Below the pieces are notes generated by a model. The model saw nothing but the letters and a program-made list of their open reading frames with translations. It ran no database searches and was not told the origin of the DNA. A DNA stretch of 63,744 nt, counting the filler, from Reticulomyxa filosa (lineage: Eukaryota > Protista > Foraminifera), in assembly GCA_000512085.1 (NCBI GenBank). It is 23 parts of 23 records of this genome, joined end to end, with 100 filler letters (N's around TTAATTAATTAA, not from the genome) between each part and the next. Parts side by side here need not be neighbours in the genome. Positions count along the whole stretch, not along the records: positions 17,128 to 18,507 come from ASPP01016142.1; 22 more parts are not named here. One strand, 5' to 3'. The translations under genes were made by a program, and so were the position numbers. Position 1 is the first letter of the stretch. Every line of letters begins with the position of its first letter. Shown piece by piece: positions 6,320 through 18,507 of this stretch.

Positions 6320-6460
6320 CCAAAGCAGCAAAAAAAAAACCTGGTTGCTACTTTGTCTTTNNNNNNNNNNNNNNNNNNNNNNNNNNNNNNNNNNNNNNNN
6401 NNNNTTAATTAATTAANNNNNNNNNNNNNNNNNNNNNNNNNNNNNNNNNNNNNNNNNNNN

Positions 6461-9400
6461 ATATGTATGTAAACTTTACCATTGTAATGGCTAATGGTGT
6501 GGTCATTATAAATGCTAATGATTTGATCAAATTGCTGAACAGCTTGATCGTACTTGTGCCATTCCATATAGACATTGGCAAGGTGTCTTCTCATAGCAAT
6601 GTTTTGTGGGTTGGACTGCAATGCCTTCAACAGATATGTTTCAGCCTCTTCGTATCTCTTAAATTCAAAACACAACAACACCGCATAGGCAACGTACAAA
6701 TGGGGCATGCCTTCGGCATAAGGCAACAGCATTTGCCACATGTGCAAGGACGTTTTCAAATCTCCTTTCGCAAACGCGTCTTCGGCCAATTGTTTCATTT
6801 TTGCAATGGAGAGGGAAATGGGAGCCATGCTATCGCTGCCTTGTATATTGCTGTCCTCTTCGCTGTGTCCTAACTTCATTTCTTCGATCACCTTTTCGTC
6901 GAGTGACGCGTCGGATAAGTCGAGCGAAGTCGGAGAAGGCATGGAGCCAGAGATTAAGATAGTGGGAGCATTGTGATCGGAGTGGTTGTGAGTGGTGCGC
7001 TTGGCCCTTGCGACAACGATGCTCTTTTGAGACACAGTTGCGTGTGTGTCGGTGGGATTGTTTTGTTCTTTCGGTTCCTTGGTTTCGTCATTCGACATGG
7101 TTTTGTTTTTGCTGTTGGTCCCTCCAATGAAATTGATAAGCGCGATATCACTTCGCTAACGCTTCTGCGGGTTGTTTGGCTGCGGAGCTCTCGTGTGGAT
7201 TTTTCTTCTTCAAATCCGACCTTTTCTTCGCCACGGTCGCTAAATTTTGCAATAGTATCAAAGCGATCGGAAGATTCTATCCAAAAAATCATCCGCATTT
7301 GAACATGTTTTTTTTTTTTTATATAATAATAATAATAATAATAAAAAAAGACCTCCAGCTCTCTTTGGAATGGAGATGGATGGCAATTGTCCTCTGAATT
7401 TTTTGAGAGGACGGTCCATTTCATCCATGTCGTCGTCGTAGTTGCAAAATGCGTCCTCGTTTTGATTCGAAGCCAGCAATTCCCTCTGTCTCGCATCTTC
7501 CGGAAATATCGTACAAAACTTTGTGGGAACGGACAAAGGCAAGGTATTGCTGTCGTCATTTGCGACGGTCGACTTTAGTTCGTGTTCAAACTGTTGCCAT
7601 ATGATTTCGCTGTAATCCGTGAGTACTCCCGGCAAAGGACTCCTGTACTTTTCCATTCGAATTTTTGTTCTCTCTTTCTTTATTGCCATCCCCAGGTCCT
7701 GTTCGATGTGTCCTTTCTCTGTCACTCTGTGAAGTATTATATATGTATATATGTATTTTTTTTTTTTGCAAAAAAAAAGAAAAAAAAAAAAAATTACAAT
7801 GTAAACAAACCTGAAACAAGGAACACTATGTGTAATGGTAGTGGGAAAGGGAGCTGCGTCGCCCAGTTCATTGGTCTGATAATGCAAATGTGCATGCTTG
7901 CCCTTGCCGGTAGGCGTCCAAAAGTCGCTTGGCGTGGGAGACACGTCGCTGCTCCTTCGTCGATGCTTTTGATAGGAATACGGATATGGATGAGGATGCG
8001 AGTGCGCATGTGGATGTGGGTGTGAATGTTGTTGATGCAATAGTAGCTGCGATTGATGGGACAGACGTTCACGATGGTGCTTCTCGGGCCAATCTTCGTG
8101 AGGAGTGCGTTTGCCGATGGGACTGAACGACAACGGCTGTCTCTCCTGAGGTGTGACTTTGCCACGGGGAATGTGAACAGGAGAATTGCCTACAGGACTT
8201 GCGTCTCTTTGATCTTCCTTGGCGTCATGAACATGTCCACTTTGCTTCACGTAGTCGTCGATACGAATGGGCGAAGGCTGTTGTAGGTGATGATCCGATA
8301 AGGGCGAGCGACGAACAGCCACTAGTCGACCTGCCGTGTGAGCATTGCGCTGACTCGACAATGTGTAGGCATTATGCTCTTCATCACTCTGCACTCCGCC
8401 ATCCGCCAATGAAGTCACTGCACTTGCCAATGACACATTGGGCTTGTTCTTTTCTAATCCTTTTTATTATAAACACACAAATAGATAAAACAAAACAATG
8501 TGTATAAAATGAGTTGTTTTAAACTTTTCTCATGCTTCAGCTGCGCATCGACATCGAGATCTGCTCGTGTGTGCTCTTTTTTTTCTTTCCAAGATGTAAG
8601 AGGAGACGAAGGGGAGGACGGAGACACTTTCACCACTGTGCTTTTCGTCTGCTCTTTGCTGTGTGACGTCTCCAACGAGTCTCTCTCATTTTTTTTATTG
8701 TCCATCTGTTCCATCGAATATTTGCTCTTTGGTGTCATGGCTATGGCTATGGGTACAATGTCCTTTGCGATTATATGACTCGGACGAGACTGCGGCTGCG
8801 AACGTGGCGTGGTACTTGTTGCATTCGACAAATGGCTTTGATAATGGTCATTTGCATTTACATTTGTATTTACATTTACATTTTCATTTACAATTGCATT
8901 TGCATTTGCATTTGCATTTGCATTTACACTTGCACTTACACTTACACTTACATTCGCATTTTCAATTGCACGCTCATTCGTGCTCATGTTCCTTTGGGCC
9001 AATTGGGGAGACAACGATTCTTGTTCGCTTTCATCGCCCACGTGTATACGTGTTTGGCTCCGCTTTTCGGGCATTGGCAAAGGCAGACGATCCGCAATGT
9101 GTTGACTTTCATCATTCGAAGGTGTGACGGCGGTGTTTGTGAAATAAGGTTTTTCTGTCTTCAATCCTTGAATTGGCGTCGACTTGGAATGGACACGAGG
9201 AATAGCATGTTCGTTCCATGATAGAGATGCTTCGTGTGCAACGCGTGTCGTGTCGATGTGAATACTCAGATTTTTCATCGCAATGTCTTTGCGTCTTGCT
9301 TTTTGGCCGGGAGATAGGCTCGTCTTGACTGGTCTGGTCATTGCGTCGTTTTCCTTTCGTGTCTCTGCGTGTTTCCAATGTTCTTCGTCATTTGAGTATG

Positions 9401-10526
9401 CAAGTTGGTTGATTCGATCACGATTGCGACTACGATTAGCATTGGAATCGATATTATTATTGGCATTATTATTGGCATTATTATTGACATTATTATTGCC
9501 ATTATTATTGCCATTATTATTGCCATTATTATTAGCATTATTATTAGCATTATTATTAGCATTATTATTGACATTATTATTGATATTAGGATTGGAATTG
9601 AAATCCAAGTCGAAACTGTCCTTTTCCTCAATACGTTGCTGATGTTGCACGGAATAACGCCTGATCTGCTCACTTCCACCTCTGTCATTGCTTGGAAACG
9701 TCAAAGTCAAAGGTAACATTGCAACCGGGGGTGGAGGAGGTGTCCTTTGACTGGTCTTGCTTTTGAATGACGTGCCAAACAGCAAGGCGCGATTTGCGAC
9801 AACGGTCGTAATGGAAGACGGGTTGTCATTGATTGGAAAGTGTTCACCGGACTCTCTCTTCGTGTCGCTTGCCTCGATAAGCAGTGGATGACGAGGAGAT
9901 ACCGACCGTGGAGGCTGCATGATTCGCAGGGGATGCAGGGGATGTATAGAATGCAGAGGAGGAGGCGGGGTTGTGGGAGTAGCGACATGATCTTTCGTAT
10001 GATTGGCTCTGCTTCGCGTCAAATGAATTGACGATGCCTTTTCCACTTTTTGTTTCGTTTCGTCTCGTCCAAAAGCGATAATGGCTCTGCCATCCCTTTC
10101 ACGACGTTGCCATGTCGCCATTGAATTGGGTGAGTCTGATGCCGCCTTCGAAGAGTGCGACTTCTGCATTGGAGCATTGTTCTGTCGCTTTGTCATCTCG
10201 TGTTGCAAAGACACGTCGTTCTTGAGGCCCGTCCGTCGCTTATTTGCTTTGTTCATCGATCGCTCTGGAGCCGAATACTTCCAACTGTGGAACGCAGAGC
10301 TATCGCTGTGAGTCGCCGTCGTTATGCTTGTGCTCGCCGCCGATGGCGAGTGTGCGCCCATGCTATCCAATTGTGTGGAAAGGATTGCACTCCCGGCTGT
10401 CGACAATGCAAAAGGTGGACTTTTTTTGTTCAGTCGCGTTTTATACTCCACTTTTCCTTTTTTCTTCAAAACTTTTTCTTCTTCTTCTTCTTCTTCCTTT
10501 GTTTCTGTTGGTCGTCTAGTCTTCAC
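6461..10526 (-). CDS. Large multi-exon protein: long disordered N-terminus plus C-terminal TPR repeats (3' partial)
   Basis: The 690-aa, 392-aa and 229-aa ORFs appear to be exons of one gene. One splice was checked in frame (GAGAAAA|gt ... ag|AAAAGAAC). TPR-like text: YEEAETYLLKALQSNPQN..HLANVYMEWHKYDQAVQQFDQII. Confidence 0.75.
8850..8960. repeat. 6-bp tandem repeats encoding (NA)n/(NV)n/(SV)n
   Basis: TTTGCA/TTTACA/CTTACA units. Confidence 0.85.
9452..9585. repeat. 12-bp tandem repeat encoding NNNA/NNNG/NNNV
   Basis: Array of ATTATTATTRGC/GAC/GCC units inside the minus-strand ORF. Confidence 0.9.
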
Positions 10527-17127: not shown

Positions 17128-17447
17128 GCATGGTGCGCATGGCTATCCGCATGGTGCACATCACGCGCGAGCACGCGATGGAGCACGGCGTGTCGATGAA
17201 GCTGCGCGTCGGCATCAACAGCGGCCCGGTGGTGGCCGGCGTCATCGGCAAGAGCAAGTACATCTACGACCTGTGGGGCGATACGGTGAACCTGGCGAGC
17301 CGCATGGAATCGGGCGGCATCCCGGATTCGGTGCAGGTCACCCGCCCGGTCTACGAGAAGCTCAAGGACCTGTTCGTCTTCGAATCGCGCGGCGAGATCG
17401 AGGTCAAGGGCAAGGGCCACGTCGAAGCCTGGGTATTGAGGCTCTGA
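17128..17447 (+). CDS. Class III adenylate/guanylate cyclase catalytic C-terminus (bacterial, 5' partial)
   Basis: LRVGINSGPVVAGVIGKSKYIYDLWGDTVNLASRMES..RGEIEVKGKG. The D in YDLWGDTVN suggests ATP specificity. GC-rich and intronless. Confidence 0.93.
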
Positions 17448-17483
17448 AGTCCAATTCTCGGCAAGCAACTCTTCTTTGTGGAC

Positions 17484-17506
17484 GAATGTTATATTATAAC
17501 ATAACA
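17484..17506. promoter_or_regulatory. Zur (zinc uptake regulator) operator-like palindrome
   Basis: Perfect 8-1-8 inverted repeat ATGTTATA-T-TATAACAT at 17486-17502. It matches the proteobacterial Zur consensus core ATGTTATANTATAACAT and lies 45 nt upstream of the GTG start. An RBS-like GAGGT is at 17538-17542. Confidence 0.82.
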
Positions 17507-17547
17507 TCTCCTCGAGGAATCCGAGCGACACATCGACGAGGTCTTGC

Positions 17548-18507
17548 GTGGAAACACAGAGTGACTTCTTTCATTCGATCTTTGCCGAATGGCTGGATGA
17601 TCCCGAGACGACAGTTGCCTGTGGAGCTTGGTCCGATGGCGCGGTTTCCGAACTGGTGCCTGGAAGGCGTGGCCATCTGCTGCCCGCGCGCTACGAGGGC
17701 TGCTTCGCCGGCGTGCGGGAATTGCGCATGGAGGATTCTCCGCATCATCTTCATGTCGATTTCGGGCGCGTTCATCAGGTTTGCTACACGGTGGCACCAA
17801 GCGTGTGCTTCGGGTTCAAGCCGTCCTTTGAAGCCAGATTCCTCACGACCGGGCCGGGCGGAGCGCCCACGGATCGATGGTCCGTCGCGCTTATGCAGGG
17901 CCGACCGTATGACTCCGGTGGGCTCCGGTCGGATGCCGTCAAACACTTCTTCGAACGGGCTCGTACGCACGCGCATATGCAGCCTTCCCTGGTCGACATT
18001 CAGATCCAGCAGGATGTGCGCGAGAGCGATGAGGGGGCTAGGCTCCTTGCGCTCTTGAGAGGCCTTCTTTCACGCCCTACGGCGGACTGGAACACGTTGC
18101 TTGCGGCGATCAGGCCGCCTGTGTCGACCGATGCCGATCTTCATCTCGTGTCTCCGACCTGTCTCCTCTTGCTCAAGCAAGCCTTGAGCCTTCGCGACGC
18201 CTCGTTGGTGATCTATCGAGATCGCACCCTGATAGAGTTCAAGACGGAAAGGCTGGACGGTGTCCATCGTTACGAGGAACGAGGTCATGTTTCCTGGCAG
18301 ATCGGCGCGTTCGACGACCATCATTGCCATCTGTCATTGACGTCTGTCGAAAGCGTTCTGTTCTCCGCAGAACCCGTGCCGTGCCAAGGCGGTGGACTGA
18401 ACTATACGATCTGGTTCCTTGTGCCCGGCTCAACGGGAAATCCCTGGCGCCGTGACGGCTACTTCTCCGTCACGTTGAACAGCCCCTACCGGGGCATGCA
18501 GCCTCGT
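17548..18507 (+). CDS. Uncharacterised bacterial protein with two tandem HemS/ChuX-like domains (3' partial)
   Basis: Internal duplication: HHLHVDFGRVHQVCY..APSVC..ALMQGRPY versus HHCHLSLTSVESVLF..EPVPC..SVTLNSPY. The pattern resembles the HLH..S..F..G..F strand order of HemS/ChuX split barrels. Confidence 0.6.

Follow-up and report, generated by a model that had tools for sequence, protein, structure and literature searches.

A putative Zur-repressed, cytoplasmic zinc- or cobalt-handling protein on a duplicated heme-chaperone scaffold

The best described proteins with the fold considered here belong to iron and heme physiology. ChuX/HutX genes sit in Fur-controlled heme-uptake loci, such as the chu locus, and HemS, ChuS, PhuS and ShuS are likewise regulated by Fur. 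Metal supply to zinc and cobalt enzymes is associated with other proteins: the leading candidates for zinc chaperones, in bacteria as in humans, are the COG0523 GTPases, with partners and clients that are mostly unknown, and nitrile hydratases are served by activators of two types, namely COG0523-type Nha3/P44K for iron enzymes and beta-subunit-like NhlE/P14K/P15K for cobalt enzymes. Here, we describe a gene for a protein with two ChuX-type domains in tandem (the tandem gene), preceded by a Zur-type operator, in a 63,744-nucleotide (nt) stretch of DNA (the window) made of 23 joined parts of the Reticulomyxa filosa assembly GCA_000512085.1. The piece analysed covers positions 17128–18507 (ASPP01016142.1; G+C 60% over the whole piece) and most likely derives from a freshwater Reyranella-like alphaproteobacterium.

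Our leading, still tentative, reading is that this gene encodes a putative Zur-repressed cytoplasmic protein that handles zinc or cobalt on a heme-chaperone scaffold. It would form a single-gene unit that Zur represses and zinc scarcity switches on. Its product is a cytoplasmic protein of ~365 amino acids (aa) with two diverged ChuX/HutX-type domains. In each domain, the heme-carrier scaffold may have been turned into a divalent-metal site, for which the proposed ligands are the invariant HHxH strand and the Cys of a neighbouring loop, probably with nearby Asp/Glu, giving probably one Zn/Co site per domain. Within the COG0523 GTPase metallochaperone network, the protein would hold or hand over Zn(II), or Co(II) in other lineages, and client enzymes would be supplied when the metal is limiting.

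A Zur-type operator ahead of the tandem gene

The features that define the start of the gene are as follows.
17486..17502, no strand: Zur-box-type operator, perfect 17-bp palindrome ATGTTATATTATAACAT = ATGTTATA-T-TATAACAT, 0 mismatches
17491..17507, no strand: second, degenerate box ATATTATAACATAACAT, 2 mismatches, overlapping the perfect palindrome by 12 nt
17538..17541, plus strand: ribosome-binding site (RBS) GAGG, 6 nt 5' of the GTG, read from the sequence
17548..18507, plus strand: open reading frame (ORF) for the tandem ChuX-fold protein, GTG start, 320 aa visible, 3' end lost at the piece edge

The original prediction had placed a perfect palindrome, an RBS and a GTG start here and had taken the palindrome for the core of a proteobacterial Zur operator. 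All three elements are present, and the palindrome, ~46–50 nt 5' of the start codon, agrees with the Zur consensus core at 17 of 17 positions, compared with 0.00 matches expected from dinucleotide shuffles of the window. For proteobacterial Zur boxes, Gilston et al. (PMC4219657) quote the core GAAATGTTATA-N-TATAACATTTC, and in electrophoretic mobility shift assays (EMSA) the Zur protein of Paracoccus denitrificans binds a related, very similar 15-bp palindrome in a zinc-dependent manner (PMC5387054). An inverted-repeat finder did not report the 8-1-8 palindrome, the arms of which are shorter than its seed.

Conservation of the site was followed in an alignment of the spacer from the window with those of three close relatives (two Reyranella metagenome-assembled genomes and one ENA contig; proteins 85–88% identical; relatives' loci carry L numbers below). 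The flanks have diverged, whereas TATTATAACATAACAT and the RBS/start block CGAGGTCTTGCGTGGAAAC are kept. The full palindrome is present in three of the four aligned spacers, the exception being L006, which retains the right arm only and has a decayed left arm; amid the diverged spacer, the perfect palindrome is kept at −61/−62 in L001, L002 and L007. The TATAACATAACAT stretch of the second box is also unchanged in three of four, and this box is similar to two boxes of 9-0-9 type, GTTATGTTATAACATAAC and GTAATGTTATAACATTAC, which stand 5' of zur, cobW or the tandem gene in L003, L008 and L052.

Beyond these close relatives, three box patterns were scanned across 136 loci (1.5 Mb), giving 16 positive loci and none among shuffled loci. 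Every box in the 16 is promoter-proximal, close either to the tandem gene itself or to the first gene of the zur/cobW operon to which it belongs. Boxes precede the tandem gene itself at −56 to −62 in L001, L002, L007, L052, L110 and L124 (in L110 and L124 at −56 and −62), and they stand at the operon head instead in L003, L008, L050 and L130; in L008, GTTATGTTATAACATAAC lies upstream of a cobW–tandem gene pair. The perfect 18-bp palindrome GTAATGTTATAACATTAC of L052 (78% identity), at −62, falls in an intergenic region shared with a divergent operon that contains znuA, an ABC ATPase gene and an ABC-3 permease gene. The expectation that homologs would carry Zur boxes upstream was thus borne out for the window's clade; most loci outside the alphaproteobacteria show no box by the three patterns and are taken up below.

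A 100-nt spacer, which holds the palindrome, separates the upstream gene from the ORF, and the G+C content of this spacer is 45%, as against 60% for the whole piece. The GTG at 17548 is the earliest start codon past the upstream stop. Judged from the closest homologs (365 aa, 87–88% identical), ~45 aa are missing from the visible product. With 4.7% His and 2.2% Cys, the earlier label ‘His/Cys-rich’ applies only in a moderate sense. A scan of the piece for sigma-70 consensus promoters and for terminators found none; a weak TGGACG-N17-TAACAT pair that flanks the box matches 8 of 12 promoter positions only, and we do not claim it as a promoter.

Other motifs were observed in more distant lineages. 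The zur–cobW intergenic regions of beta-proteobacterial loci (L009 ~700–950, L017 ~7400–7650, L019, L021 and L042) are without a ATGTTATA-type box and share another motif, AT-rich and approximately TAATGCGAATA..ATATCATTAGCA, placed between the divergent Fur-family gene and cobW, which may be a lineage-specific Zur operator. In an Acidimicrobiia locus (L034 ~9860–9880), a 7-3-7 palindrome, GGAATGA-GAA-TCATTCC, similar to actinobacterial Fur/Zur boxes, stands 5' of the tandem gene, and a Bdellovibrionales locus (L040 ~6400–6440) holds a palindrome with 17-bp arms, GCTGTCACTATTGCAAA...TTTGCAATAGTGACAGC.

A small family with two ChuX/HutX-type domains

The domains and motifs of the encoded protein lie at the following positions.
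17551..18078, plus strand: N-terminal ChuX/LFE_1968-like domain, aa 2–177 (P0003 model, VIA-align Z 13.4 to 3na2)
17743..17754, plus strand: HHLH motif (H66, H67, H69) of the N domain, invariant in 42 members and in 79 non-redundant members
17806..17808, plus strand: Cys87 of APSVC, N domain, invariant in the 42 and the 79 members
18154..18507, plus strand: C-terminal ChuX/HutX-like domain, aa 203 onward, truncated (VIA-align Z 11.3 to ChuX 6u9j/2ovi)
18319..18330, plus strand: HHCH motif (H258, H259, C260, H261) of the C domain, invariant, pairing with HHLH by hhalign
18382..18384, plus strand: Cys279 of EPVPC, C domain, invariant, pairing with Cys87 by hhalign

The tandem ChuX-fold family is small and sharply bounded. 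A word-index search returned 224 homologs, none named beyond ‘hypothetical protein’ or ‘uncharacterized’, and a profile run exhaustively against 1.84 billion cluster representatives returned only 103 proteins at E ≤1e-3, all unnamed. Searches of Pfam, NCBIfam and PDB sequences with the ORF, 42 members and the family profile gave no significant match, and the sole Pfam signal was sub-threshold, to PF22684 (LFE_1968-like; E 0.06–0.23, 12–13 bits versus a cut-off of 27). Neither the ORF nor any of the 42 members matched PF06228, nor did they match PF05171 at E up to 1. When the 42-sequence alignment was compared by hhalign with E. coli ChuX and ChuS (from NC_002695), the probability was below 1% (0.3% for ChuS).

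The relationship between the two halves of the protein is much clearer. Profiles of the N and C halves align by hhalign with a probability of 96.4% (E 1.2e-9, 79 columns), pairing HHLH (66–69) with HHCH (258–261), APSVC (87) with EPVPC (279), and PY (120–121) with PY (313–314). The two diverged copies described at the outset, each with HHxH, a downstream Cys and a terminal PY, thus reflect an internal duplication that the profile comparison indicates is real. A split form of the family was also observed, in which an N-like gene (~170–220 aa) and a C-like gene (~160–200 aa) adjoin or overlap by 4 nt and retain the HHxH/Cys motifs (L053 8001–9121, L056 7459–8546 and ~23 more: L057–L074, L087, L088, L109 and L136).

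Structural comparison supplied what the sequence searches did not, using an AlphaFold model of the full-length relative P0003 (87% identical to the window ORF), built from the 42-sequence alignment. Its mean predicted local distance difference test score is 85.6, and the linker at 194–199 is of low confidence. By VIA-align, the N half superposes on 3na2 with Z 13.4 and a root-mean-square deviation (rmsd) of 3.0 Å over 137 of 138 residues. The C half (model residues 203–336) gives Z scores of 11.3 to ChuX, 10.9 to 3fm2, 10.8 to 2hqv and 9.3–9.4 to HutX 5exv, and lower ones, 7.0–7.7, to PhuS/ChuS/HemS (ChuS 7.3). Foldseek against the PDB ranks 3na2, 3fm2, ChuX, HutX and HemS/ChuS/PhuS at the top, and a Foldseek-independent search of 48,161 PDB chains found five at Z ≥5, all of ChuX/HutX/HemS type, the next being at 4.9. 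Similarly, the neighbours in the ESM Atlas, by features and by shape, are LFE_1968-like, ChuX_HutX, HemS and DUF7676 proteins, and Atlas models of the LFE_1968-like and ChuX/HutX families give template-modelling (TM) scores of 0.72–0.82. The protein is thus, according to the model, two ChuX/HutX-type domains in tandem. On the whole chain, superposition on PhuS 4mf9/4mgf is poor (rmsd 15.1–15.2 Å, Z 5.6–6.1, Foldseek TM 0.23–0.26), although the packing of the domains in the model is itself uncertain. The early comparison with HemS/ChuX therefore holds for the fold, shared by both halves, and for the tandem layout, and does not extend to a Pfam match or to whole-chain superposition on HemS/PhuS.

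Conservation within the family is very strong. Members from Proteobacteria, Nitrospinota, Planctomycetota and Actinomycetota are 45–60% identical to one another, and the 79 non-redundant members have ~38 essentially invariant residues in common, across contexts. The set includes H66, H67, H69, D71, C87, E95, H258, H259, C260, H261, E275 and C279, and many of the others are Arg, Trp, Tyr, Asn, Gln or Glu. In the model, HHLH lies within and just ahead of strand 67–71, and Cys87 in the loop following strand 75–85; by strand order, the HH turn and this Cys loop, two strands further on, would share one edge of the sheet. A quick IQ-TREE maximum-likelihood tree of the 79 members places the window ORF in a nine-member clade (SH-aLRT 98) of Reyranella-type genes with L052, L110 and L008, all zinc-linked, and puts hydratase-linked members at at least three separate positions.

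Zinc and cobalt contexts and the competing explanations

Genomic context was counted at 60 non-redundant loci of the fused type, each flanked by 5 kb or more, by tblastn with reference proteins checked by Pfam/NCBIfam. Zinc-regulon markers (COG0523, Fur-family genes, FolE2, HemB-like ALAD, DUF1826, DUF1636, HisI-like PRA-CH and ZnuA) are found at 33 of the 60, with a COG0523 gene at 32, and nitrile or thiocyanate hydratase genes are found at 15; one locus has both contexts. A COG0523 gene directly adjoins the tandem gene on the same strand at 22 of 78 loci. Among 11 informative split loci, two lie within nitrile hydratase operons and none in zinc islands. The neighbours anticipated for the homologs were thus encountered, as they adjoin zur, COG0523 GTPase genes, znuACB and TonB receptor genes.

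The zinc islands are elaborate. In Burkholderia pseudomallei, the order is zur–cobW–cobW–tandem gene–FolE2–cobW–CysRS–YidD–QueD-like...gamma-CA...ThrRS, and in Pseudomonas aeruginosa a core of the same type stands beside conjugative-transfer genes. The zur–cobW–cobW–tandem gene–FolE2 island (L003 1–7200, L050 18436–21173) looks mobile: in B. pseudomallei, it adjoins an IS21-type transposase pair and type VI secretion system VgrG genes, and in P. aeruginosa it adjoins type IV secretion system coupling-protein and relaxosome-like genes and has a second Fur-family gene inside. At L048, zur is divergent from genes for ZigA-like, YjiA-like and tandem proteins, a TonB receptor, an ABC importer, DUF6925, HisI-like, DUF1826 and DUF1636 proteins. 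The stretch 3' of the tandem gene (L048 7704–15574, likewise L049) holds a BtuB-like TonB receptor and a BtuF/BtuC-like importer, all below NCBIfam cut-offs, the DUF6925, HisI-like cyclohydrolase, DUF1826 and DUF1636 genes, and a MetH-type S-methyltransferase, and may serve to import corrinoids or metallophores in connection with zinc starvation.

The hydratase loci carry the cobalt-type CTLCSC motif wherever it is readable, and one hydratase alpha subunit is assigned by NCBIfam to the thiocyanate hydrolase gamma subunit (386 bits, cut-off 291). At several of these loci, the tandem gene is part of the hydratase operon. The operon of L030 and L100 reads beta–alpha–activator–(isochorismatase)–amidase–tandem gene, and in L056 a LysR gene is divergent from N-like, C-like, alpha, beta, activator and amidase genes. 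Cobalamin genes flank the tandem gene at a single locus, L046. The same invariant residues recur in proteins of the zinc-starvation islands and of the cobalt-type nitrile/thiocyanate hydratase operons, and because ~38 residues are invariant whatever the context, the molecular activity is presumably the same in zinc and cobalt settings. In P. aeruginosa, zinc and cobalt can be exchanged for one another where Zur is in control (PMC13083405), and since cobalt can stand in for zinc in this way, a shared Zn/Co role is plausible. Zinc, nitrile hydratase and cobalamin are the same three contexts that are given for COG0523 itself in passages of Haas et al. (2009; PMC2770081). The cobalt-type hydratase context, which the original prediction did not foresee, argues for a metal (Zn/Co) rather than a porphyrin role.

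Several observations weigh against the Zn/Co-handling reading. Contigs from RNA runs gave no signal for the ORF, their matches being confined to the conserved cyclase domain of other organisms. Most non-alpha loci show no recognizable Zur box by the three patterns, and the zinc link there consists of neighbouring genes; neither zinc nor hydratase context is found at 13 of the 60 fused loci. The clustering of the His and Cys residues at one sheet edge is inferred from topology only, by strand order. The known ligand of the ChuX-type fold is heme. Finally, ~38 invariant residues exceed the needs of a simple chelating site and look like the make-up of an enzyme or small-molecule pocket.

The last point leads to the explanation that survives best beside our own, unlikely as we consider it: a metalloenzyme with an unassigned reaction, in which what was once the heme pocket would house a catalytic metal centre made by the HxH strand and neighbouring ligands. 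Such a reaction would have to be required both in zinc starvation, where the protein might replace a zinc enzyme to which it is not homologous, and beside nitrile/thiocyanate hydratases. Catalytic metal sites commonly have an HxH motif on a beta strand, the abundance of Arg, Trp, Tyr, Asn, Gln and Glu that stay invariant in all phyla and contexts and the high identity between phyla would suit catalysis, and HemS/ChuS-type proteins can be catalytic, with ChuS called a heme-degrading enzyme in the PDB title of 4cdp. Zur islands are moreover rich in replacement enzymes such as FolE2, ALAD, PyrC-like, gamma-CA and HisI-like proteins, in the loci analysed here and in the same survey (PMC2770081). 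However, the Pfam, NCBIfam and PDB sequence searches revealed no likeness to any enzyme family, the recurrent partner is a metallochaperone GTPase and not a pathway enzyme, and no one substrate joins zinc islands, nitrile hydratase–amidase operons, thiocyanate hydrolase islands and a cobalamin-gene neighbourhood. None of the specific candidates weighed, be it an analog of aldoxime dehydratase, of COS hydrolase or of carbonic anhydrase, or a QueC-like role, suits all three contexts.

A binder of tetrapyrroles (heme, Zn-protoporphyrin or a corrinoid), which would traffic or degrade its ligand when Zn-dependent HemB limits heme synthesis, is in our judgement improbable. It draws on the match of both domains to the heme binders ChuX, HutX and HemS/ChuS/PhuS and on language-model neighbours in the HemS and ChuX_HutX families. 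Against it, no sequence match to the HemS/ChuX families was found and the domain arrangement differs from that of HemS/PhuS (whole-chain rmsd ~15 Å). In L048/L049, the gene precedes TonB receptor, Peripla_BP_2, FecCD and ABC ATPase genes, as in hemin loci, and the best NCBIfam matches there, both below curated cut-offs, are a heme ABC ATPase for the ATPase and BtuB for the receptor. A transporter neighbourhood is nevertheless seen at few loci: a TonB receptor and an ABC importer are nearby only in L048/L049 and L052, all of them Zur/COG0523 islands. ALAD paralogs downstream in L010, L028 and L036 and the cobalamin genes that flank L046 would also suit a tetrapyrrole ligand, but the cobalt centre of nitrile/thiocyanate hydratases is non-corrin, and a porphyrin carrier would therefore be without an obvious role at the 15 hydratase loci. 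In addition, an invariant Cys beside His suits Zn/Co better than heme iron.

Very improbable, in our view, is a palindrome without Zur function, either AT-rich and palindromic by chance or bound by a different Fur-family regulator, with the gene zinc-independent here. The nearest relatives L001, L006 and L007 have no Zur, znu or COG0523 gene in the surrounding 10 kb, and the decayed left arm in L006, the missing consensus promoter and the absence of RNA signal for the ORF point the same way, yet the complete agreement with the Zur core against an expectation of 0.00, the position kept amid a diverged spacer, the alpha- and beta-type Zur boxes at equal offset in the next relatives, beside znuACB and cobW, and the EMSA binding of P. 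denitrificans Zur to a very similar motif (PMC5387054) all count against it.

The arrangement in the window's own lineage is simple. The upstream neighbour is represented by one further feature.
17130..17447, plus strand: 3' end (last 105 codons) of a class III adenylate/guanylate cyclase gene (PF00211, E 3.7e-33)
In L001 and L007, this upstream gene encodes a 708-aa dCache–HAMP–cyclase. The order cyclase, tandem gene and convergent MarC-family gene is conserved in the Reyranella lineage, where the tandem gene is probably monocistronic. The suggestion that the gene might be the first of an uptake operon cut off by the contig end does not stand for this lineage, as the nearest relatives show it alone between the cyclase gene and the convergent MarC gene.

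Further neighbourhoods were observed in other lineages. In Nitrosomonas (L023 9334–9684 and L029), a gene for a small metal-binding protein (SMBP, PF16785) lies immediately 5' of the tandem gene, and on the downstream side a convergent nitrile hydratase operon, which includes a COG0523 gene, points towards the tandem gene. In one clade of Burkholderiaceae that shows neither zinc nor hydratase markers (L024 5136–6461; similarly L025, L027 and L044), a bacterial eRF1-like gene (baeRF family 3) comes after the tandem gene. In Nitrospinaceae (L010 6393–9900 and L038), a COG0523 gene of 451 codons' product length (451 aa) and two genes with WD40 repeats precede the tandem gene, in agreement with the association of COG0523 subfamily 5 with WD40 genes given by Haas et al. 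(2009; PMC2770081); ALAD, amidohydrolase, FolE2 and ZIP transporter genes lie downstream.

Comparison with known systems

A compact and strongly conserved tandem family that lies beside COG0523 genes in many phyla offers a testable handle on the allocation of zinc and cobalt. If our reading is true, a heme-carrier fold has been reused for a different ligand. A broader proposal, which we hold to be possible but doubtful, is an unrecognized class of metal-trafficking proteins in which a duplicated ChuX scaffold with His/Cys Zn(II)/Co(II) sites would act as a partner or acceptor of COG0523 proteins and as an extra maturation factor for cobalt-type nitrile and thiocyanate hydratases; in that case, the long-sought COG0523 chaperones would gain a defined companion protein. 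For annotation, the tandem gene could serve as a marker of Zur regulons, including the island of Burkholderia pseudomallei and the mobile-element-associated one of Pseudomonas aeruginosa, and for biotechnology its product may be a missing helper for the expression of cobalt-type nitrile hydratases. Literature searches for links of ChuX/HutX/HemS to Zur or COG0523, for 3na2, LFE_1968 or DUF7676, and for the accessory genes of thiocyanate/nitrile hydratase clusters yielded no description of the tandem family and no paper that connects the ChuX fold with Zur or COG0523. The motif and the partners of the protein are new; the type of fold and the type of regulator were already known.

The closest counterparts in structure are LFE_1968-like proteins (PF22684; 3na2, Leptospirillum rubarum) and Ava_4353 (3fm2, ‘putative heme-binding protein’), with Z 13.4 for the N half on 3na2 and Z 10.9 for the C half on 3fm2. 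They differ from the tandem protein in being single-domain proteins of ~135 aa without known association with Zur, COG0523 or nitrile hydratase. ChuX/HutX proteins (PF06228; 6u9j, 2ovi, 5exv) share the domain fold (Z 9.3–11.3, rmsd 2.6–3.2 Å over 116–118 residues) at an identity of 10–15% and with no profile match. HemS/ChuS/PhuS/ShuS proteins (PF05171) come closest in layout, as they likewise have two ChuX-type repeats per chain and ~340–370 aa (Foldseek probability 0.8–0.96, per-domain Z 7.0–7.7); however, they have no sequence match, and their mutual domain packing differs from that of the tandem protein's model (rmsd ~15 Å). The surroundings differ as well: the tandem gene neighbours metallochaperone GTPases and cobalt enzymes, not heme oxygenases, and the window carries a Zur box rather than a HemS-type Fur-controlled heme locus.

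In genomic niche, the nearest systems are DUF1826 and DUF1636, which passages of Haas et al. (2009; PMC2770081) present as Zur-regulated accessory genes of COG0523 islands and which belong to unrelated folds and families. Like the tandem gene, they are found repeatedly next to Zur-regulated COG0523 genes and zinc-sparing paralogs. The tandem family is not mentioned in those passages or in the corresponding ones of a 2024 metallostasis review. Unlike DUF1826 and DUF1636, it also occurs in cobalt-enzyme operons. There, it resembles the nitrile hydratase activators, which are encoded in operons with the hydratase subunits, as the tandem gene is in L030, L056 and L100, and a comparable part in supplying metal is proposed for both. 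The tandem protein is homologous to neither activator type. Since the beta-like activator is also present in these three operons, the tandem protein would be an additional factor and not a replacement.

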